This document shows positions 1-52,500 of a stretch of DNA of 64,000 nucleotides, one piece after another (position 1 is the stretch's first letter; each line of letters begins with the position of its first letter). The stretch covers positions 7,626,001 through 7,690,000 of the forward strand of contig OZ249451.1 in NCBI GenBank assembly GCA_965235115.1. The letters run 5' to 3'. Both the position numbers and the translations under genes were made by a program. Source of the DNA: Laetmonice hystrix. Lineage: Eukaryota. Under the pieces are notes generated by a model, which ran no database searches, had not been told where the DNA came from, and saw only the letters and a program-made list of their open reading frames with translations.

Positions 1-98
1 GGTGGCATTTTAGTGGACGGCAAGTTTATTAAACCAGGAATCCTTCATATTCACTGCCTCAAGTTATTAGACGTACGGTCAGAAACCGGACGACGACC

Positions 99-3000
99 AT
101 GGCTCATCCTCAAAGTCTTTGTTGTCTATTCGTCGCAGCGGCCTTCTTGATTTCTATGGGCCCCTGTGAAGCTGCCGAAGACACAGGTAAAACCTTAGCA
201 TACAGCAAAAGCATGACTATAAATTGGGGCTACCATTTCAACTAGGCCTACGTGTGAATAATAATATGGCGGGAACAGTTCGTGTCTTGATTAAGTACAT
301 CTCGGCCCCACTTCACGCACTCTATACTCCCATTGCCACCATGCTTCTTTTCATTTGAGATTTATGTAAGCAGACTCCGTAAAATGACGAATATTATCAT
401 TTATTTGGATAAAATCAAGATACTGTGTGGTAGTTGCTAAGCATCAAGTCTCCGTCCTCAAAGCCCCCCCCCCCACGCACCCCTGACGAAGGGCCTTAGC
501 CTGGTCCCCTGCCTACCAGATATATGTAGTCAATATTGACCTGGGGACGAGGCTAGAAGGGCCTGAAATGGCCCTGTCGTAATATGCTGGATTTTGGCAA
601 CTCTAAAACCTAAAATAGTTTATGCAATACATGGAGGGACATGAACCTCAACAATGATGGGTATCATTTAGGTCTAGGCCTACATGAAGACTACCAGTGC
701 CACGCGACTATGTAAAGGGGTAATATCAAGAGTCAAGGTATTACGTGTTGTATCGAAACAAACCTAGGACTGCAGTCTGCGGGTAACCAAAGGAACTCTT
801 CATATTTCCACGCAACATGTCCCGGGATTGCATTATATGATGTCTTTTTTTACCAATTTCCCAGAGGAGCAGGGTTTATGACCGTCTCTGAAGTACCTAA
901 ACTTCGGACCCCCCCCCCCTCCTTAACCAATTTCTTGATACACCACTGTACATCCAATATCTGACGCAGAAACTCCCACACCAGGATTCAGGTGTTACGC
1001 CTGCTCATACAATCAAGAGGCCGACGATTCCTGCTACACCTCACCTAGCAAAGAAAAGTACGTCCGCTGCCTAAACGGAAAGTCTTGTACCATCAAGAAC
1101 ATTGTATTTTCCGGTAAGTAAACCACAGTATACTGTAAAGAATGGTGAATTATCTGCCCCCCCCCCCCCTGGCTTGCATCCGCAACTCCTGAGTTGTGGT
1201 GATGGTGATTATGTTGCTTTTCGGCAAATGTTGGCCATCTTCAGGGCGAGTTGTTCCCCCATTTATTATCCCATCTCCCGGGGGGAAGTAGGATTTTTAA
1301 GTTGCTGGGTTTCGTCTATACTATTCTTGCTTCTTTTTCTTATGATTATTCCTGTAGTTATAGAATATAGCTGTATGGCAGGATCACAGATTATTCCTAT
1401 TGTGAGACTATGGCCGTATCTCAGTTATCTCTGAAGGTATCGTCATGAAACTTGCAGGCAATATTGCCTGGTTGGTTGTTGACCTGGCATTGACTTGAAC
1501 AGCCAATGAGATTCATCGGTTCATCTCGGTGATTCTTTGAAGCCAAACATGTGTTATACACTATAACACAAGCAGACCAACCAGATCACGATCTTCCACA
1601 TGTAAATGGTGAACAGATGGCCGAATCACAGAACGCTCAAATTAAACGACAGAAAACGGTAGAAATCCATATTTGGGAAAATATGCGATCCTACCTCTAG
1701 TTTCGCCAATCAGAGTTTCTAGTTCAAGCTCGGGTTAGGATGGTGGGATGATACATAACAAAAAACAAAGCAAGACAAAAACAAATTACTCGGACAACAT
1801 CCTACTCCGTCCGTGAGGTGCGGTGGTAAGGGTTCTTTTACGTGCAACACTACATAAAGAGTGTAACCCCGTCGAACCCACAAGCAGTAGGGGTCCAGGG
1901 AGAGGCTAGGGGGCCCGGGCTATTTATTATTTTTGGATAAAGATACATTAGTACAGTCAAAATTAAAAGCTGAGAGTGGCAGGGCAAAAAAGATTTAGGT
2001 GGACTTATCAAACTGCTGGTGCCCTCTTATCAAAATCCTGGTGGGCCCCCTGATCAAAATCCTGGATCCCCCACTGCACAAGGAATTCTACACGCAACTA
2101 TCGCCTTTACACAACCACCGAGACCCCCCCCCCCTCCTTACCACCAACTTCAAAGGTACCTTTGAAATCTCCGAAGACAAAGATTCAGTCTTGATCAGCG
2201 TTCCGTAATCTCACTATGCTTGGAGAAAAGGAAAATATCATTTTATCATGTTGTATTTTTGTATTATGCTTATTTGTTCGAGCAAGTCAAGCTTTTTGTA
2301 AAACAAGATCAAGGTTCTCAGATTAAATGACCATACTCTCCAATATTTTGGTTCTTAAACCGTTCGTACTCAGAAACACATTGTAAACGCATTTAAAGAA
2401 CATTTTTCAATGAATTTGCGCGGATTGTTGCCTTAAACAAGAACTCTCCAATTTCCATTTTCACAGGAACTGAAACTGTCTATAGCTTTGAACGGAACTG
2501 TTATGTGGATCGCGGCGACCAAGGCTGTGTAGATGGCGGCGGATTCCGTACATGTCTGACCTACTGTAAAGGCGATTTTTGTAACGTAGGCAACGGCTTG
2601 AACCCACCAACTAAAAGACCTCTCGCTGGCGGCTCTGGCCAAATGATAGCTGCCACAGACACAGGTAAAACCTTAGCGTACCGCAAAAGCATGACTATAA
2701 ATTGGGGCTACCATTTCAAGTAGGCCTACGTGTGAATTATAATATGGCGGGAACAGTTCGTGTCTTGATTATGTACATCTCGGCCCCACTTCATGCACTC
2801 CATACTCCCATTGTCACCATGCTTCTTTTGATTAGAGATTTTTGTAAGCAGACTCCATAAAATGACGAATATTATCATTCACTTGGATAAAATCAAGATA
2901 CTGCTGTTTGCTAGGCCTAAGCATCAAGTCTCAGTCCTCACCGACCCCCCCCCCCCCCCCGCACCCCTGAGGAAGGGCCTTAGCCTGGTCCCCTGCCTAC

Positions 3001-5372
3001 CAGTCATACGTAGCCGTAGCCAATATAGACCTGGGGATCAGGCTAGAAGGGCCTGAAATGGCCCCGTCTTAATATGCTGGATTTTAGCAACAACTCTAAA
3101 ACCGGAAATAGTTCATGCAATACACGGAGTGACATGAACCTCAACAATGATGTGAATCATTTAGGTCTAGGCCTACATGAAGACTACCAGTGCCACGCGA
3201 TTATGTAAAGGGGAAATATTAAGAGTCAAGGTATTACATGTTGTATCAAAACAAACCTATGACTGCAGTCCGGGTTTTAGTCCATAAAATGTCTTTAACT
3301 CGTAGTACGTCTTAGAACTTCTGGTTAATTATAGCTCGACTTGACCAGCTCATCAGAACACCTCAGACATTTGTTGGGTCTTGCGAGCGTACATCATTTC
3401 CAAGTACCCCCCCCCCCCCCACCTTCCGTTGAAAGAATGACTATATTAATGACATTCTTTGTAAAACAGGCGTGTAAAAAGTGCATTATTTTGACCGAAG
3501 GAACTCTTCATATTTCAACACAAGATGTCCCGAAATTGCATTATTTTTTTTTTTTTAATTTCCCAAAGGAGCAGGGCTTATGACAGTCTCGGAAGTACCT
3601 AAACTTCGGACCCCCCCCCCCCCCTCCCTCCCTCCTTAACCAATTTCTGGATGCGCCACTGTACATCCAGTATCTTATGCAGAAACCTCAATAGAATGCT
3701 ACAAGTGCTTCTACAACCAGACGGTGGGAAACACGAGTTGTGTGGATGGGACTGGGCCTGAGACAGAACGCTGTGATGGACAGTGCTTCTCTACCCGTAT
3801 CGTCAAAATAGGTAAAATTATATAAAAACAAGTAATACGTTATGGGTTATTCCTGTTGTAGGCCGACATTTCCGTGTCAGATCAGGAGGGAGGGCACAGG
3901 GTCGAAACTCCAAACACTCCAAACAATAACAGAGCTAGGCCTACAGAACAGACACTCTATAGAAAATCTATGACTATCTTGACATCATAATTACTTTCTG
4001 AAGAATACAACTGACCAGCAAAATGGTGATATTTACTTTAATAATACTGCTAATATTTTCCAACAATTTAGACCAGCCAGAGATAGTAAGTGTGGAAAGA
4101 GGCTGTAGAGAGGAGAGGGAGGCGAACTGCAACGACAGACCCGAATGTACTAAAGTATGCGGAGATGACCTGTGTAACAATGCAAGCTTCAGTCTGGACG
4201 CAGCTCCTCCACACACGACTCCCAATCCAGGATTCAAGTGTTACCTCTGCTCATACAATCGAGGGGACGAAGATTCCTGCTACACCTCACCTAGCACAGA
4301 TTTGAACGTCCTCTGCAAAGATGGAAAGTCTTGTAACATCAAGAACGTGGCATTTTCTGGTAAGTAAACGACAGTACACTAGAAAGAATGGTGAATTATC
4401 ACCCGAGTTGTGGTGATGGTGATTATAGGCCTATTATGTTGCTTTTCTGCAAATGTTGGCCATCTCCGGGGCGAGTTGTTCCCCCATTTATTATTCCATC
4501 CCCCAGGGGGAATGGAATTTTTAAGTTACTGGGTTTCGTCTCTACCATTCTTGCTTCTTTTTCTTATGATTATTCCAGGTGTAGACTATGGCCTTAAGGC
4601 AGAATCACAGATTACTTCTAGAGTTAGACTATGGCCGTATCTCAGTTATCTCTGAAGGTATCGTCATGAAACTTGCAGGCAATATTGCCTGGTTGGTTAT
4701 TGACCTGGCATTGACTTGAACAGCCAATGAGATTCATCGGTTCATCTCGGTGATTCTTTCAAGCCAAACATGTGTTATACACTATAACACAAGCAGACCA
4801 ACCAGATCACGATCTTCCACATGTAAATGGGGAACAGATGGCCGAATCACAGAACGCTCAAATTAAATGACAGAAAACCGTAGAAATCCATTTGGGAAAT
4901 GCGATTACATGTATCGTGTTGTATTTTTGTATTACATGTATGCTTATTTATTCTGGCAGGTCAAGCTTTTTCTAAAACAAAATCAAGGTTTTCAGGTTAA
5001 ATGAAGATATTCTCCGATATATTTTGGTTCTTAAACCGTTCGTACTCAGAAACACATTGTAAACGTATTAAAAGAACATTTTTCAACGAATTTACGCAGA
5101 TAGTTGCCTTAAACAAGAACTCACCAATTTCCATTTTCACAGAAACTGGAGTAGTCAATAGCTTTGAACGGAGCTGTTATGTGGATCGCGGCGACCAAGG
5201 CTGTGTAGATGGCGGCGGATTCCGTACATGTATGACCTACTGTAAAGGCGATTTCTGTAACGAAGGCAACGGCTTGAACCCGCCAACTAAAGGACATCCC
5301 GCCGGCAGCTCTGGCCACACGACTCCTGTGGTAGTTCTTGTACTATCTTCTGTTTTCTGGCAAATTCTCTAA
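99..5372 (+). CDS. GPI-anchored three-domain Ly6/uPAR (three-finger, LU) protein, 358 aa, 6 exons
   Basis: Exons 99-186, 970-1113, 2467-2664, 3683-3811, 4072-4359, 5143-5372; all introns GT-AG and phase 1, frame open throughout. Signal peptide MAHPQSLCCLFVAAAFLISMGPCEA; three 10-Cys domains ending in the LU signature C-x2-D-x-CN (CKGDFCN, CGDDLCN, CKGDFCN); C-terminal small-residue stretch plus hydrophobic tail (GSSGHTTPVVVLVLSSVFWQIL) typical of a GPI signal. Confidence 0.85.
170..5312 (+). repeat. Tandem segmental duplication of about 2.5 kb inside the Ly6 gene (unit 1 ~170-2642, unit 2 ~2643-5312)
   Basis: By-eye alignment: 187-900 matches 2665-3600; 970-1690 matches 4218-4895; 2240-2642 matches 4910-5312. 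Intron identity is about 90-98%. Confidence 0.95.
1885..2076. mobile_element. MITE with CAGT..GGATCCAGG-type terminal inverted repeats
   Basis: Left end cagtaggggtccagg, right end cctggatcccccactg; 6-bp direct repeat cacaag on both flanks (1879-1884, 2077-2082). Lies within a ~550-bp insertion absent from the second duplicated unit. Confidence 0.7.
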
Positions 5373-6310
5373 GATTTTTCACTTCAGCCCACTACTTGAG
5401 ACCACGCTTTTTCTTAAAATCTTCCCTTCTACAAGAACGTTGATACTAGACTTATTATCCTAATAGGGTAAAGATCCATGCATTATTGCAAGAGTATGAG
5501 ATTATTATGAGAATTATGAAAACCGGCTGAAATTACCGGGCTGCCAAAGGCAAAATTATGACTTCTGTGGTAGCCTATTAGTATTGGGAGTCACTCAGAC
5601 CCCCCCCCCCCCCCCCAAACACAAATGTGTTATTGGGGCCAGGGCCCTTATGACCGGTGATTTTACCATCATGCCGTACCTTGAACTGAGCACCTACTAT
5701 AACAAAGAGGAAATCCCTTTTATAAATGTTCTTTATTGGGTCACATATAATGAATATTACTGTCGGAGCTCCAGCACTGTGCAGTGTATATTATCGTCAT
5801 CACGCCCGTGGCCTTCAGGCGGGGTTCTCAGTACTAATATCCTCATCACCTTAACAATCATCTGTCTTTCATGTATCGTTACAATATACTGTTTGAGTGG
5901 TCTATTCCGGTGAATTCAGCTAAAAATCTGCGAAATTGCATCTTCTTAACGAAAACCTGTTATTAACACATTACTTGTTCACGAAACAAGGGAAGGCAGA
6001 TAGATTATAGATGTAAGATACACAGGCCCCCTTTCCGCATCCTGCTGGGGATGGGGGCATAACTGTTAAAACTGCTGAGGCACTGAGTGAAAGAAAACAA
6101 ACATCAGCTTTACAAGTATGTACCGTAAAGCAGGATAGAAAACTACGAGGGCCTAATGGTACCAATCATCCTAGTTCACCAGAGTGAGCAGCCAGTCAAT
6201 ATGAGTAAAGGAGACGGCATGAGATTTACATAAGAAATATTTAACTGTTTTCTTTCTGATGCTGACTAAGCTAGTCGTATGCCGCTAGAGAATCAATGTA
6301 CCTCTTCTTT

Positions 6311-6316
6311 AATAAA
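6311..6316 (+). terminator. Candidate polyadenylation signal of the Ly6 gene
   Basis: First AATAAA seen downstream of the stop at 5372; a second lies at ~6364. Confidence 0.4.
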
Positions 6317-9300
6317 TTATACAAGAGCTGTTAGCATTTAACATACTGTATTGTTGTTCTTAAAATAAAAGTTTGCGCTGATTGGACATTATGTGGGGGC
6401 TTGGTGGTAAGTCATACAGATTTCTTGTGTTCAAACTCAAGAAATATTTTTCAGTTCGGCTGGAATTACTCCTTCTCGAATTGGATTCTGACACATCCAA
6501 CAACAACAAAAAAAGAGAGAAAAAGAAGACAGGCCAATATTCGACCTAGTGATTCCACTAGATTCCACACAATATGTGTTAAATTCTACTCACAGAACAT
6601 ATCAAAAAGAATTCTGACTACTTGAGACAAGCCATGAAGCGAGTATGGACAATGTTATGATAATGTATTCCCACTTTCTGAGTTATAAATCTAGGAATGC
6701 AGAGTCATAATGCTAATATTGGCCACTAGTGTCTGACTTTCGGCTAACGAAAGCACTTGGTAGTATGAAACAAAGCATCACAAAAAGGACAGGCAAAACC
6801 ACACAAAATTCAAGGTCCCTCAATGATATTCCAAGCCCACGTGTGCTTAAAAAGTCAGGCTATTTGGAATACTTTCTTTTCAAATCACACAGCTTACCAC
6901 GGAGCTCTCATGAAATTTACCCCAAAAAGACAGGCAGAAATGACCAGAAATCGACCTGCATAACGTTTCAGGATATTGTCATTCATTTGACCAAACAATA
7001 AGGGGTGATTTTACAAATTTCAGGAAATCCTGGACAAGTACAAACTCTTAAGGCCGAATCACAGTTCTTATATAAGTGACCGAATCATTTTATGCTAAAC
7101 GTCGGCGACTAGACTTGTCAATCGGGTTTGAATGGTGGCACGAACTGGTCGCCTACATTATACGGCGATAGATTTTTCATGGTGTCCTCCCACCATAATT
7201 TGATCAGAATTCCTTTAAAGCACAAACGTCCCTGTCTTGTCCATATGAAAACATCTGATTAACACCGTTCTGATATTAATCTTCTAAACTTGATTTACAC
7301 AAAACATGCCTGGTGGACCAAACAAAATGAACACATGATTCGAAGTGACCTTTTTTGATTTCGTTTTTTATAAATATGATCAAGCTTTCTACGACCTCGC
7401 AGAACCAAACATGTAGTAAGCATCTTAGGTTTCTCAGCGCGAAATGGTTGATTTAAAAAAATATATTTATTTATTGAGCTCGCAGTTCCTGCTACGATTT
7501 ATTTTCTGAAATCACTATGATTTTTTGGGGGGTGTTAGCACAATTTCTTTCCCTTTGTTATTCGTTCACCACACCTACGTCACCAATCACAGCCTACCAT
7601 AGACACTGTGGCACATTTATTTACCACTCTAACACTATCCCAACTCGGCACAACTAAACGCCATGCAACACAGAATTACGTCCTTACGGCTTGCACATCG
7701 CAACTTCTGACAGGAGATTGCTGCTGCACATTTATCCGTCTGTGTCTACCTAGAGCGCTGCACAGAACGCAGCATCTAACTTAAACGGTTGATATACAAC
7801 CCCCATTTCTTACATACACATCCTTTCTATATTTAGGGCAGCTTAACGTAAAATAATGCAACAACAACAGATTAAGGGTTGTTAGGGAAAGAAAACCTCT
7901 ACAACCAAAACGAGAACAGAGATTATCTTTTAGACAGGGGTTACTTTTTATTCCCCTTTTTCTGTTCAAATCCACTCACACTTGGTCCACAAGTGTCGTG
8001 TCGGCATTATCAGCAGACATTCCAAAGCCTTATTTATGCACATTTGGATCAAATGAAATGCCGAAGAAAAAACTAAGTCGCTCAAATACTCATTCGTAGA
8101 ATCCATTCATCGGAGTGTGATAAATATCAAAATCAAACGCCATGATTTTAGGTCGTGCTCCCCACACTGGCAAAACAAAATCTGAATTTAAATCTCAACT
8201 TCGAAGGAAAGTTTCCGAGAAAAAGACCATCCTTATCTTTCAAACGACCAGTGGTACTGGAGCAACTTTTAAAGCATACACATTTACCATTACCAAGTAC
8301 CCCGTTTTGTGCAGTACCCTGCAGTGCTGCCCCCATGTGGATTCTGGGCGATACGGACAGGCCTAAGCCCCTCGCTGCACCGGAAACTGTGAATTTTCCA
8401 AGTCCTATTTGATTTATTTACGGGCGTTTCTTTCCCCGGCGACTTACACAATGATTCAGGCAACAGCTCCTAGGTGGCGTATCAAATTCTGGCAATTGGA
8501 CATATTTATGATCATTATGACACTGGAAACATTAAACAAGCATTTTCTGTTCAAATCGGACTATAATGTATGTTAAAGTGGGAGCACCCTATGGAAGAAT
8601 CTACTTCCGACATCCCCAGGCTCTTTATCGGCGACATGGTACAGACTGGCGAGTTCATTCCTTGCGACCTGGTGCTTCGCTGATGACCTTATGTTTTTCA
8701 AATTGGGAAAGATTATTTCTGTAATCACTGCTTCCCGCAGCAATGCATATGATCAGGTTTTAAACCTAAGGGCGGTCTACCTCCCTTGGTCAGTTTGAAG
8801 ACTGGAATATAACCCCTAAAAGTAGCTCATGGTATAAGTGGGTTTTGATCGGACTAGATCATAAAAGAAGTTAGCAGACCTCAGGCAGGAACCGGGTTTG
8901 AACCACCCCGTTTTCTCACAACAGGAATATCAAAATATCGTGCCGTCAGATTCAAGACGTGTTTTTCGTCCCCTTTCTGTGGTAACCTCCATAAAATAAA
9001 GAGGGATTGTATATAAGAAACTGGATATATTGCAGCAATGATGACATTTCATGACTGACCGTGCTATTTATAACTCAGCTCACTTCATGGACTGGTGTGG
9101 ATGGAATGATGAGAGAACACCTATGCACCAACTTTATCGGTCCCATCGCTATAAATTGTCAGCTGGTTTTAAATGGGTTGACACCGTTCAAATACTGCTA
9201 TTTTTAATTTGCCGCTTTCTATGCACGATTTTAAGAAACCCTCTGTCTCCAGCCACTCTCATGCTCCAGTCTTAATCCACCAAAAACAAACAAAAAAAAT

Positions 9301-40529: not shown

Positions 40530-42211
40530 ATGAACTTTCTTGCACTGGAGGAAATCCGTAGGTTTAGAGACCAGAAAGACACTCTGCTCCATCAAGCAGC
40601 CTATAAGGGAGACGTCTCACACATCAAGAAACTCCTAAAAGATGCGTCCTTACGTAACAAGATCAACAGGCGCAACAGGCTTGGCTGTTCCCCACTCCGC
40701 TTGGCAGCCACTGGCAAGTAAAAAATATATCCGGAGAGAACATATCCTGTAATTAACAAAAGTCGAATGCGAATAATAGTCATTATAGTGATCAATAAAA
40801 TACTTCTGCCATACAACATGGCAAACAATTAGATTAGTGTTGCTTTCTCATCGTATAAAAATAACTAATTCTGCTCATCCTATGTCCAATATGTGTGGCC
40901 TTACCTTCACAAAACTGAAATGATCAAATGTAACAAAATAATTGATTGTTCCAAGTCTCTTTGCAAAACAACAGATTTTCAAAAATGAACCATAATGAGT
41001 GTAATTTGTAAACCAGAAGGTTCCCATAGGACTAATTGGATGCTTGAATCTGACCTCTCTTACAGGGGGTCACACTGAGGTTGTTTCACACCTCCTTGAG
41101 GCCGGGGCAGAGGTCAACATCAGTGATATAAAGACCCAAACGCCACTTTATGTAGCGGTGAAGAAGCACCATCTGGGCTGTGTCAAACAGTTGCTGCGGG
41201 CAGGGGCTGACCCCAATGGAGATGAGCGTAGTCTCTGTACACCAATATACGTAGCTGCCATGGATGGGTGGGCTGAAGGAATGAAGGTAGGACCCTAGAG
41301 ATTGAAATGGTATTGTAGTGATTCTTAACCCTTACTTGTGGGCTGTGTCATGGCCAGCTTTAGATAGGAGTGTAATTTTTGTAACTACAGGTATGAAAAT
41401 ATCAAATCATGCTTATGAAAATTACCATATTCGTGAAGGAAAAATAAAATTTAATTCTTAAAAAAATCAACTTCAGTAACTGTGCTGAAAGCAGTGACAT
41501 AGATCTAACCAGAGTACTTTTCTCATGCAGGAATTGATCCTTCATGGAGCTGACATTGATCGTTCCCAGGCCAGTGTTGGCACAGTCATAGGTACACCAC
41601 TCTACATTTCAATGGTCTATCATCACCAGCCCTGCTTCAGGATGCTTCTTCGTGTTGGAGCAGACCCCGATGTTCAGTGTCGGAGTCATCCAGGTGACAG
41701 AAGTCCCCAAGGTGTCGTGCAGTCCCTTTTCCATGCTGCTGTCCGTCACAACTTGGATGCCTTCTACCCTCAGGAACTTTATGATTTTGGTGCAGGGCTT
41801 TACTTCAGGGATGACAAGGGAAGATTGGCATCTGAACTTGACACCAACAATGAATGCAGGCGTTTCATTAAGACCTTATATGGTAAGAAGACAGAACAGG
41901 AATAGGTCCTGACCATATGATATCCTTTCAAAAGTAAAAGAAAGTTTCTGTTTAATCGGTTTTCAAATATAAAACTTTTTAGGATATTAAAGGAATAAAA
42001 ATCCTGGTAATCCACAGATAGCTTATCAAAATATTCAGGAAAAAATAGTCGGATCAAAAATATTTTGCTTTGAAAATTTGCAGATAACCCACGGACCCTA
42101 CTTTCACAGTGTCGGATCAAGATAAGAAGTTGTTTAGGGAAAAGTCATCTTACTGCCATCCAGGATTTGCCTTTGCCTAGCAAAATCAAGACTTATCTAC
42201 AGCACCACTAA
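40530..42211 (+). CDS. Ankyrin repeat and SOCS box protein (ASB1/ASB12-like), 294 aa, 4 coding exons
   Basis: Exons 40530-40713 (GC donor), 41066-41286, 41531-41882, 42084-42211. Ankyrin repeats (LLHQAAYKGD, SPLRLAATGGH, QTPLYVAVKKHH, LLRAGADPN, TPLYISMVYHH) and a SOCS box NPRTLLSQCRIKIRSCLG..LPLPSKIKTYL; layout matches ASB1/ASB12. Confidence 0.92.
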
Positions 42212-48202: not shown

Positions 48203-49583
48203 GCGTTAAGGGGCAATGTGACACTGTTTGAAAGTATAGCCGCGAGGATGAGAAAAAAGAAAGGAGCCATGGCAACTGCATCAAACAAGACTACTGGTAG
48301 TCCCAAAAATTCAGTCTCCAAGTCTCCGTCAAAGGGCTCTGCCCCCCTCAGCCCTAAGTTATCGAGTCCAACAAAATGCATCACCCCAAGCCCTGTGATC
48401 TTGAGCAAGGAATCTGTGTCGCCCACACCCAATGGGACGGCAAAAGACCACTTGCCATTACACAATGGAAAAGCTGAGGATGAAGACAAACCAAAGGCCC
48501 CTTCGACACCGAAAACCCCACAGACTCCAAGGACTCCTCGACCTGCAGAGCCAGGGCCTTCAGGACTTAACCGACCTCCTGTTGGTCCATCTGCAGATGG
48601 TAGGGTACCATCAGCAGCTTCTTCAATAACAATATTTTCCCCTGCAGATCCACTTGGGTTAAAGGATCGGGGAAAGGTGACAGTTGGAGAGATAGTCCAG
48701 CAGATTGAAATAAAGTCTGGTGCATTGTTGCGAAGAGATGACTTTACGAAAGCAGACGTTTGGCCAGATTTGAGCTTTCTTGCGCAACAGTCACGTTACA
48801 ATTCGGATATGCATGTGAAGCGGAAACTCTACATGAGGATGGTTGACAACGGCCTTCTGAATATCTTCTTGAAAGTTTTTCGCTCCATCCATGGGATTGA
48901 CTTTCTGAATATGCTCCAGGCTGCACAGGAGGAAAATGCAGACAACGTGTCTGAGGCATCATGCATTATGAACGACACAGGAAAGGATAAGGACTCGATA
49001 TCATTCATAGACGACAAAGACTGTGAGGACGACCGGAGTATTGGAGTACCAGAGGACATACGAGACAAACGTGGTAAGATTGCTGCAGCGGAGCGATATC
49101 GCAACATGCCCGACTTCATGAAGAACTTCCGGGCTGCGATCACTTTACTTTGGAATGTTAGTGAGAAATCCCCAGCCTTGTGTGAGGAGTGTATTAAGAA
49201 AGGAATGATCCAACTTCTGTTAACAGATCTGACAGATCCAAGATTGGGAGTAAATGACTTGAAGGATCCAAACAAGCTGCACCTCGTGAAAGGATACCTT
49301 GGCATCCTCAGCAACCTTGTGCGTTTCCATGGTGAAGCGAGGGATATATTTCGTGATTCAGGAGCAGTGAAGATTCTGCAGCATTATCTGAAATCCTCGT
49401 TGCTTGTGATTAAGTCAAAGACAGTCATGCTGCTATCCTATATTATAAATGAAAGTGAAAATGATATCATCAATTCTTCGGATAAGCACATAGCGTTCTT
49501 TGTGAAAGTGCTACAAACAGCTGTGGAAAGTGAAAATCACTATACTAAGAAATATGGATACTGGGCAGTTGAAGTTATTGCAG
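48203..49583 (+). CDS. Large coding exon of an armadillo-repeat protein (probable N-terminal part of an invertebrate ARM-TIR type protein); gene partial
   Basis: Strong acceptor (T-tract then TAG at 48200-48202), 460-codon open frame, donor CAG|GTAAGC at 49583/4 (phase 1). First ATGs at 48248 and 48269. S/P/T/K-rich N-terminus followed by amphipathic helical ARM-like repeats (GMIQLLLTDL, YLGILSNLVRF, GAVKILQHYL, VMLLSYIINE). No downstream exon recognised before 64000. Confidence 0.75.
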
Positions 49584-52500
49584 GTAAGCAGCTTTTCATT
49601 TGGTTTGTTTTTCAGGATAAACACTAATTAATTGAAATTGCAAAATTGGTTTTCTTTCAGTATCAGAGAGGAAGGTAAGGGGAACTATGAAATTTTGATT
49701 AGCTCGTGATTTCGAGTTCTGTGGTATTTATAGATGGCTAAACATTGACGTCATGGCTGATAAATATGTAGCACTACTAGCCATGGTGGCTAATGATTCT
49801 CAAAGCCCACTTCTAATAATAACACAATGAAGGAAGAACAAAGGCCTATATCATGGCAGTTGGCTGATGGCGTGCACTAACTGACTGTACCTGCATTTTG
49901 AAAGGACTGTTTGGCAGAGTCCGCTGCCATGGTGGTTAGTTTTGGCTAGTGTATTGGCCTCACTTGGAAGGCAAACCATGGAAGCTTCCATACAACAAGA
50001 GACATCCTACACAAAAGTGACCTTTCATGTATGGCATCATTTCAAGCACAGGGTAGTCTCTCATTGTAGCCATCTTTATATATATTTCTTTGAGGTATAA
50101 ACACAAAATAAAAGTGAACTGCACATTCAACTTCTTGCTGCCAAATTCCCAGGCTTGGTAAATGTATACTTCCAAGTCCCCTGCTGTATAGGGTGTTGTA
50201 GTTTGGTCATTTACTACAGGGCCCCACTCCATGCACTAAGTGTATCCAGATGACCAAACTGTGAGGACTTCATTGACACTGACAGCATGCTGGGGTAATT
50301 GACTAAACAGGGCTGGTGTCCAGGCTAGCAGTGGGACCAGGTTATGGTGGCCAGGACTGGGCTGGAACAGGGCGGGAGGTCTATGTGTTCCTGAGTTGCA
50401 TTTGGAATGTGCAGTCATGACAGTATAGGGGCTGGGGCTGAAGGTTTGTTCAAGAATCGTGGTATGTTCCCAAAAATTTGAGGACAAGAAGATCATGTGC
50501 ATCAATATTATAATAAAGGTCTGGTACTAACATGACAGTTTGATGAGGAAAATATTTCCACATAGTGTTGATTTTATTACTTGAGCCTAATATTTTGAAA
50601 CACTTTCCTTAAAATTGTAGATGCGACTGAATTAGTGTAAATGGTAACTGCGTCCTGAGTGTAATAAGTACTGTATTATCATGGTATCCCTAGGAAACAG
50701 AACGAAGAATAGAGCAAAGGGGGATTAAGGTCAATAGGTCAAGTGAGAGAACCTGGTACCCAGTTCGTTGATTTGGGTGGCTTCTTAAAACCATTAAGTA
50801 AATTAATTCTATACCTCACAACATATTTATCCAGATTTTAAATTTTAAGTAACTCAGATTTGTTAAGATATGGACATGTCCATCGTTTTATTATCGAGGG
50901 GTGATCAAATATCAAATGTTAATCGAATCAAGTGAACTTATTTTTGTGATATTTGAAACTTGATTCACGCAAATAAAAAGAACAATGGCAATTTCATAAA
51001 ATAATATGAAGAAACTAAAGAAATCCATGTTGATTCCACGGCTTTGATAACTTTCCTGTATAGATCTGTGTGTCTTCTGTATTTGATTAAAATCAGATTT
51101 GCTAGCTGTCCAGAAAGCTTAGAGATGAAGGTAAATTAAACTTAACTAGGGTCAGCTTTATGGAAATTGATATAGTGAGGTGGTAGAGGTCAGTAGGTTG
51201 TTGCCATGGCAACAAATATTTTCTAAATGGTAGAAGACAGATGTTTACCTGCCGGCACCTGGTGCCCTGATTGCAGGTAAACAAAAGGAGCTTCTGAGAT
51301 GGCTGGGAGCAAGCACGTGGTGTCCAGGTGGCTATTCAGTGGGCAGCAGAGCAGACATGGCCTCAGACCTCTGAATGAATTAACTTTGTAAACCAGGCTT
51401 TGGCTCATCCTTGAGGTGAACAAGTACACAACAAAGGTTTTACAGTAGTAGGTGGGTTGATATCTGTGTGGTCATGTAGTGTACACTTCAAATTGTTTGA
51501 AGGAGGCTTTTTATGATCATCAGCATCGTTTGTTCTTGACATTGTGTGACCTCGACAACCCCCTTGAAAACCCCCTTACCATCACCGACTGTCATGAAGT
51601 ACATACATATTGTACTTTATTTTGTAATTACGCCCTGTGCTGAAAGAAGATTTTGCGTTGCTCTTGACACCATTTCATCACAGATTTAGAAAATAAATCA
51701 GGACAGTACCGTACCAGTTTCTATTTTGATGCCATGATGAAATTGTCAATTTGACCACACATATTTGGCTTATGAATCACTGAGATATGGGAAAGACCTC
51801 AGTATATATTCTACACTTGATATGTTGGAGCAGGCCTTTACCATTTTAACTTGGGGCACTAAATGAAGTCCGACCATTTGAGTGAGTAATTTGATGCCAT
51901 TTTTTTGAAATCTGAGACCGTGAAGGCTAAACCGTAAATGCCCCTTTCCTTTGGCCAAGTTTATGGTCCAACCTGGAACAGATGTTTTCTGTGGGGGTTG
52001 CGTACACCCAGCTGTCGTTGGGGGAGGGGAGGCGCTGGAAGAATTGCTAGAAATGCTACAGGTTGAGGTAAAAGTACTACAGGAAGGGGCCTTTGGCAAG
52101 AAACTAATGACTTTGTATTTAGGTCACTTTTTTCTCGATGATTAATCTGTGAGTAAGTGTCTGGAGGTTGTGAAAGTTGTCCTTCATCTGGGCGTAGATT
52201 TTTTCAAACATGCCAGTGACTGTCTGAGTAGAACAAAAACTTGGGTAACGACTGGGAAACTAGAGCGAGGACGCGAACTCGTCTGGTAGTAGCTTGAGGT
52301 GATAGGTCTGACACGAATGACAGAGCTAGACATTCCTGGTGAAGACACTGAAGTAGCTCGAGTCAGTATTATTGGTTTCTGCTAACTTGAGTGTTTAAAT
52401 CTGAGGTGCTATATTAACTTTGAAGAATGTTACCTGTCAAGAAAGATGTCTTTTAGCCTTGTTCACCAAACCTTAAAAAAATATTTGATATCTGAAGTAG

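Follow-up and report, generated by a model that had tools for sequence, protein, structure and literature searches.

Multi-domain proteins of the Ly6/uPAR (LU) class, among them uPAR with its three LU domains, C4.4A/LYPD3, TEX101 and CD177, combine a signal peptide, tandem LU domains and a tail of the glycosylphosphatidylinositol (GPI) type, and in uPAR-type proteins each domain is encoded by an exon pair joined by phase-1 introns. Some invertebrate genomes hold large LU repertoires, with 101 in Lingula, and sponge proteins carry one to three LU domains (PMC13719153). In the snake three-finger toxin genes, which undergo accelerated exon evolution (ASSET), the loop-coding exon segments change radically while the introns stay more than 85% alike, the cysteines are retained and one segment near the C-terminus is conserved (PMC2711939). 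Here we describe a gene at one end of a 64,000-nucleotide stretch of Laetmonice hystrix DNA (GCA_965235115.1, contig OZ249451.1, positions 7,626,001 to 7,690,000, forward strand; hereafter the window, in which all positions are given). Its predicted product consists, in this order, of a hydrophobic signal peptide, an LU-B1, an LU-A and an LU-B2 domain, the motif GSSG and a hydrophobic GPI-like tail. LU-B1 and LU-B2 are copies of each other, and their fingers 1 and 2 have replaced amino acids at about twice the neutral rate.

Divergence of the duplicated exons and introns

To compare the two B domains, which provide two sequences only, we aligned their N-terminal halves (the BN pair, 970-1113 against 4216-4359), their C-terminal halves (the BC pair, 2467-2642 against 5143-5318) and the introns of the two units. 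The BN pair differed at 26 of 144 nucleotides (18.1%), or 24 of the 141 nucleotides in 47 whole codons; of the 18 codons that differed, 17 encoded another amino acid and one was silent. In the BC pair, 17 of 176 nucleotides differed (9.7%), with 11 amino-acid-changing and 3 silent codons. A preliminary description of this DNA, made by hand alignment, had arrived at exactly the same codon counts for the first exon and at the same replacement and silent counts for the second. The introns had 120 mismatches in a total of 1,536 columns. Once a low-divergence tract at 1405-1688 was set aside, they differed at 115 of 1,257 columns (9.1%), and these mismatches were evenly spread (chi-square P 0.52-0.59). 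The excess of BN over the introns was significant (Fisher P 0.0018), and BN contained the densest mismatch window of the entire 1,856-column alignment (scan statistic P 0.007). By contrast, BC diverged at the level of the introns, so that the proposal of exons evolving faster than their introns holds for BN but not for BC.

The BN mismatches were distributed over the three codon positions as 6/12/6, the excess lying almost entirely at replacement positions. They fell in fingers 1 and 2, and all 10 cysteines were kept in both B copies, both as anticipated in the preliminary description. We considered two other sources for the BN changes and rejected them. CpG decay is at odds with the 16 transversions against 10 transitions, and ectopic conversion from a third paralogue is at odds with the presence of only two DNA-level copies in the genome, the next paralogues being at most 41% identical. 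No indel was found in 320 nucleotides of exon, whereas the introns showed 20 indel events in 1,257 columns, predicting about 5 in the exon length (P 0.006); both B copies have therefore been maintained.

Selection and constraint

The two copies differed at 7 of 70 synonymous sites (10%), giving a synonymous divergence (dS) of about 0.10, equal to the Jukes-Cantor distance of the introns (0.098). The ratio of nonsynonymous to synonymous divergence (dN/dS, omega), computed by NG86, LWL85, YN00 and maximum likelihood (three or four methods per region), was 1.2-1.6 for the whole B domain, 2.0-2.3 for fingers 1-2 and 0.27-0.32 for the finger-3 core (codons 59-96). When codons were simulated at the intron rate, 8.6-9.3 amino-acid-changing codons were expected in BN and 17 were observed (P 0.003-0.007), while in core codons 53-96 only 3 changed codons were observed against 8.1 expected (P 0.026). 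The pattern suggests adaptive divergence of the loops.

We favour, with moderate confidence, an adaptive specialisation of the duplicated B domains of one surface protein, seated in fingers 1-2 and followed by a local conversion patch. Both B copies would have been kept under selection, as judged by the absence of indels and stops, the intact cysteines and the low omega of the finger-3 core, while fingers 1-2 (970-1113 and the twin 4216-4359) would have gained replacements at about twice the neutral rate. The two B domains would then present different binding surfaces, to a ligand and from an adaptive cause that we presume. A more far-reaching version, which we put forward only tentatively, is toxin-like evolution within one non-venom invertebrate Ly6/uPAR gene: positive selection on the first two fingers of either or both B domains, with conversion homogenising some of the non-coding DNA, may have produced a GPI-anchored receptor with two distinct binding heads.

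Several observations weigh against an adaptive reading. Because the two sequences compared have just seven silent changes between them, omega does not significantly exceed 1 when dN is set against dS alone (Fisher P 0.41-0.55). Setting the neutral rate to 13%, that of the highest intron sub-window, raises the P value of the codon test to 0.067, and merging mismatches no more than 2 nucleotides apart leaves 15/144 against 95/1257 (P 0.25), so that the excess at the nucleotide level is gone. The differing sites of BN are also variable across the family, as weakly constrained sites would be. The tract at 1405-1688 likely reflects local conversion, and the introns may thus understate the age of the duplication. 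Finally, a search for sequencing runs yielded DNA data only, in three runs from one sample, and splicing into a single transcript is a prediction.

Part of this is what would be seen if constraint had been relaxed and mutations were clustered, the redundant B-domain loops drifting through multi-nucleotide events and chance without any adaptation. The dN/dS result, the loss of significance on merging and the variability of the altered positions across the family would all fit, as would the two hits found in 6 of the 47 BN codons (P 0.07 for clustering). Drift, however, cannot surpass the neutral rate, and the codon count, which is insensitive to clustering within codons, still stands at 17 against about 9. 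Moreover, adjacent mismatches occur in the introns too, and constraint on the adjoining core is clear (omega about 0.3). We consider such drift unlikely, but not negligible.

Polarising the changes with outgroups was uninformative (9 versus 6 sites), and an exhaustive HMMER search combined with cluster look-ups found no relative above about 50% identity for an orthologue-based test of the codeml type. Thus, of the diversifying selection proposed in the preliminary description, the replacement excess of fingers 1-2 stood, whereas dN/dS alone did not bear it out. Nor can selection among alleles or paralogous genes be read from these data, since the comparison concerns the divergence between domain repeats of one protein.

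The low-divergence intron tract and the repeats

The near-identical intron block on which the preliminary description had based its intron rate was recovered with a similarly low count (5 mismatches in 279 columns, plus small indels), but it proved to be an outlier from the remaining introns (Fisher P 3.5e-6). On its left it borders a highly diverged segment (1358-1404, 28%) and on its right an indel. The tract begins upstream of an interspersed repeat (about 1440-1730 and 4660-4905) that has at least 1,320 candidate copies in the genome, 70-89% identical to the local copy, and a read-derived depth in the thousands. Both local repeat copies share their flanks and a private 20-nucleotide internal deletion relative to the repeat family, and therefore derive from one old insertion that was duplicated along with the unit. 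Separate transposon insertions were accordingly rejected as an explanation of the near-identity. Unit 1 retains the repeat's 3′ end to about 1730, whereas the unit 2 copy is truncated at 4905. No long terminal inverted repeat was detected in the repeat, and a search of window positions 1-6000 against Rfam gave no match, which places the conserved intron tract outside the known RNA families.

The simplest reading is that the tract is probably a gene-conversion patch, in which about 285 bp of intron would have been homogenised after the duplication. Conversion, which the preliminary description had listed among the findings that would refute its claim, would explain the intron identity over a patch of about 280 bp only. 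This patch, with its sharp edges and its 1.8% divergence, makes conversion between the units probable, and an older duplication (more than 9%) could be imagined on that basis: conversion would have reset the introns and BC, and BN, having escaped by chance or through selection against conversion, would only seem fast. With so few silent changes in BN (3 of about 30 sites), a silent divergence of 18% there is conceivable. The introns outside the tract, however, are homogeneous, with no mosaic of patches, the silent sites of BN (10%) match the introns rather than the replacement sites, and the excess falls nearly all at replacement positions. We regard an older duplication as improbable, and retain adaptive specialisation with a later conversion patch.

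Runs of 10-20 C were seen at 467-478, 911-921, 1165-1176, 2131-2141, 2945-2960, 3408-3420, 3611-3625 and 5600-5616, within introns or past the end of the gene. They often lie in similar contexts and in bins of very high read depth, and are probably parts of another repeat family.

Gene structure and predicted product

The coding structure, rebuilt from window positions 1-7000, is that of one gene with six exons on the + strand (99-5372) and an uninterrupted frame of 358 amino acids (aa). Every exon has AG/GT borders and every exon join is in phase 1. Exons 2 and 3 encode LU-B1 and, after it, a linker; exon 5 is shared between two domains, its first half completing the LU-A domain begun in exon 4 and its second half opening LU-B2, which exon 6 completes (Table 1). 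The two copies are thus the first and third domains of a single predicted protein, and not two genes of a recognition system as first proposed. The putative signal peptide was recognised by eye as a hydrophobic N-terminus, and the putative GPI signal by eye from its sequence pattern, comprising GSSG, a short spacer and a hydrophobic tail of 14 residues. The product is probably a secreted protein with a GPI anchor; that the six-exon gene is expressed and spliced as modelled we infer from the open frame. A signal peptide and a GPI signal are typical of membrane Ly6 proteins but are not needed for the domain itself.

Table 1. Coordinates of the gene, its duplicated units and the intron tract, as positions in the window
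Feature	Position	Strand	Counterpart	Description
Exon 1	99..186	+		Start codon and putative signal peptide MAHPQSLCCLFVAAAFLISMGPCEA...; GT donor at 187; opens the 358-aa frame
Intron 1	187..969	+	Intron 3 (2665-3682)	Homologous; 64 mismatches in 772 aligned columns
Exon 2 (BN of unit 1)	970..1113	+	4216-4359	N-terminal half of LU-B1, fingers 1-2; fast-diverging
Intron 2	1114..2466	+	Intron 5	Homologous; 1689-2241 without counterpart in unit 2
Low-divergence tract	1405..1688	+	4626-4904	5 mismatches in 279 aligned columns (1.8%) and small indels
Exon 3	2467..2664	+		C-terminal half of LU-B1 (finger 3, CN motif) and linker; last 17 nucleotides mark the duplication junction
Intron 3	2665..3682	+	Intron 1	Copy of intron 1 with an additional 215 nucleotides at 3271-3491
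Exon 4	3683..3811	+		N-terminal half of LU-A
Exon 5	4072..4359	+		C-terminal half of LU-A, linker and N-terminal half of LU-B2 (4216-4359) in a single exon
Intron 5	4360..5142	+	Intron 2	Copy of intron 2; contains the twin tract 4626-4904
Exon 6	5143..5372	+		C-terminal half of LU-B2, small-residue stretch GSSG, hydrophobic tail VVVLVLSSVFWQIL, stop at 5370-5372
Homologous segment	170-784 (unit 1)		2648-3275 (unit 2)
Homologous segment	786-973 (unit 1)		3494-3686 (unit 2)
Homologous segment	972-1689 (unit 1)		4218-4905 (unit 2)
Homologous segment	2244-2641 (unit 1)		4912-5317 (unit 2)

History of the internal duplication

The two units were mapped by self-comparison and global alignments (Table 1). 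Exon 3 ends with 17 nucleotides (2648-2664) that repeat the end of exon 1 (170-186), together with its donor site. At the junction (2642-2664) the homology to B1 stops at ...GGCCA and is followed by six bases, AATGAT, and then by the exon 1 copy with its donor. The shared 17 nucleotides show that the two units were joined in frame by one tandem duplication, whose breakpoints lay in exon 1 and in the terminal exon. Its age may be estimated at about 0.10 substitutions per neutral site. The junction created a methionine, residue 137 of the product, behind which there is no signal peptide.

In unit 2, the copied intron is followed by LU-A and only then by the B exon; precisely this LU-A stretch (531 bp, including 273 coding nucleotides) is missing from unit 1. 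Judged from the paralogue described below and from relatives outside the genome, the two-domain A-B layout is ancestral, which argues that LU-A was lost from unit 1 rather than gained by unit 2. A 531-bp deletion after the duplication would have removed LU-A from the first unit, in frame since 273 of the missing nucleotides are coding. Two further stretches are specific to one unit: 215 nucleotides (3271-3491) in intron 3 and about 550 nucleotides (1689-2241) in intron 2, both with high-copy sequence. Since unit 2 has lost the shared repeat's 3′ end, a deletion in that unit accounts for some, if not all, of the gap opposite 1689-2241.

Assembly check

Contigs were derived from one sample sequenced in three short-read runs. 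In them the unique flank (90-267), unit 1, the junction bin (2582-2759) and unit 2 had similar depths (about 35-65), and so did the LU-A portion that only unit 2 possesses. The three DNA runs probably come from the assembled individual and are not independent support. That origin, together with the RNA-free run search, is what could be said for an artefact or dead DNA, in the form of mis-joined haplotypes, two genes or a pseudogene. Mis-joined haplotypes, a possibility raised in the preliminary description, would give half and double depths rather than a uniform one, and the units are set apart by large indels and a whole domain. A pseudogene sits badly with a 358-codon open frame free of exon indels (P 0.006), and a second gene from Met137 would start without a signal peptide. 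We therefore hold an artefact or a dead copy to be very improbable, and keep to a single maintained gene with two probably specialised B domains.

The read-derived contigs carried A for G at position 4110 in two of the three runs, which would change Glu to Lys in LU-A (CREEREANC); this is probably a heterozygous site in the sequenced animal. A second variant, at 1382 (G/C), is intronic.

Fold and relatives of the domains

B1, A and B2 are three-finger Ly6/uPAR (Quiver-like) domains, the structural evidence, drawn from models, being clear and that from sequence comparison weak. Each has ten cysteines and ends in ...C-x4-CN, and cysteines 8 and 9 are spaced C-x3-C, departing from the adjacent CC usual in LU domains. 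AlphaFold modelled B2 with a predicted local distance difference test (pLDDT) score of 86 and a predicted template modelling (pTM) score of 0.76, and LU-A with a pLDDT of 81. In Foldseek searches with the B2 and A models, the top 50 matches in the PDB were all three-finger or LU proteins; they included LYPD6 (6gbi, TM 0.63), GPIHBP1, C4.4A, Lypd6b, uPAR, Lynx1 (E 6.8e-4), TEX101, CD177 and snake toxins. The Ly6 identity assigned in the preliminary description is thereby borne out.

By sequence, Pfam and PDB searches with the single 358-aa protein gave nothing meaningful, and a word-indexed protein search with the full product gave no match. The B2 domain alone scored 13.1 bits against the Pfam model QVR (PF17064), below the cut-off of 27.3. 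Of 19 B-domain relatives, 10 matched QVR and 6 UPAR_LY6 (PF00021), with a best E value of about 2e-5 and all below the cut-off, and a B-domain profile search of PDB sequences returned human LYPD3 as its sole match (E 0.0028).

No third close copy was found in the genome at the DNA level, the sole two close copies being domains of one gene; with a count of two, the locus is not a diversifying paralogous gene family. A more distant paralogue lies 3.7 Mb away (C21:11288708-11291830, at about 800-2100 therein). It has A and B domains and a hydrophobic tail and, unlike the gene in the window, an intron between the C-terminal half of A and the N-terminal half of B. Its introns are rich in (CT)n and (CATT)n microsatellites. 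Another paralogue match lies at C21:10.41 Mb. The best relatives outside the genome are uncharacterised two-domain A-B proteins of 240-270 aa from brachiopods and other lophotrochozoans, such as Lingula anatina XP_013407584, at no more than 37% identity. Lingula, Haliotis, Owenia and Capitella were among the sources of relatives, in keeping with a genome of annelid-like character. One relative from Manduca carries the name UPAR/Ly6 domain-containing.

Comparison with known systems

The predicted protein shares with uPAR and its multi-domain relatives a putative signal peptide, the tandem LU domains, a putative GPI-type tail and the encoding of each domain by an exon pair joined by phase-1 introns. 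It differs from them in the absence of orthology, in a third domain that comes from a recent lineage-specific internal duplication, in its C-x3-C-x4-CN ending where uPAR-type domains have CC-x4-CN, and in its short third finger. QVR, the model of the insect Quiver/Sleepless Ly6 proteins, is the closest in Pfam, but the match stays at 13 bits and those proteins have one domain rather than three. With ASSET in snake toxins the locus has in common the three-finger fold, changes in a loop exon against similar introns, retained cysteines and a conserved segment towards the C-terminus. Here, however, two domains in one non-venom invertebrate gene are compared, where the toxin work compares paralogous genes; acceleration is confined to one of two exon pairs, and a single pair of sequences is available.

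The locus is a well-characterised candidate, in which selection is suggested, for a general phenomenon that is already known; the "fast-evolving recognition system" of the preliminary description is a hypothesis. If the acceleration is adaptive, the gene would provide a compact and datable case of a multi-domain three-finger receptor gaining a new binding surface: a duplication within the gene, joined in frame, would have been followed by the loss of a domain and then by rapid change limited to two fingers. An ordinary surface protein would also be added to the snake toxins as a case of exons evolving faster than introns, in an annelid-like lineage whose Ly6/uPAR proteins are numerous yet unstudied.

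Elsewhere in the window, open frames of 469 aa (48218-49627, + strand) and 126 aa (41525-41905, + strand) are candidate exons of further genes.

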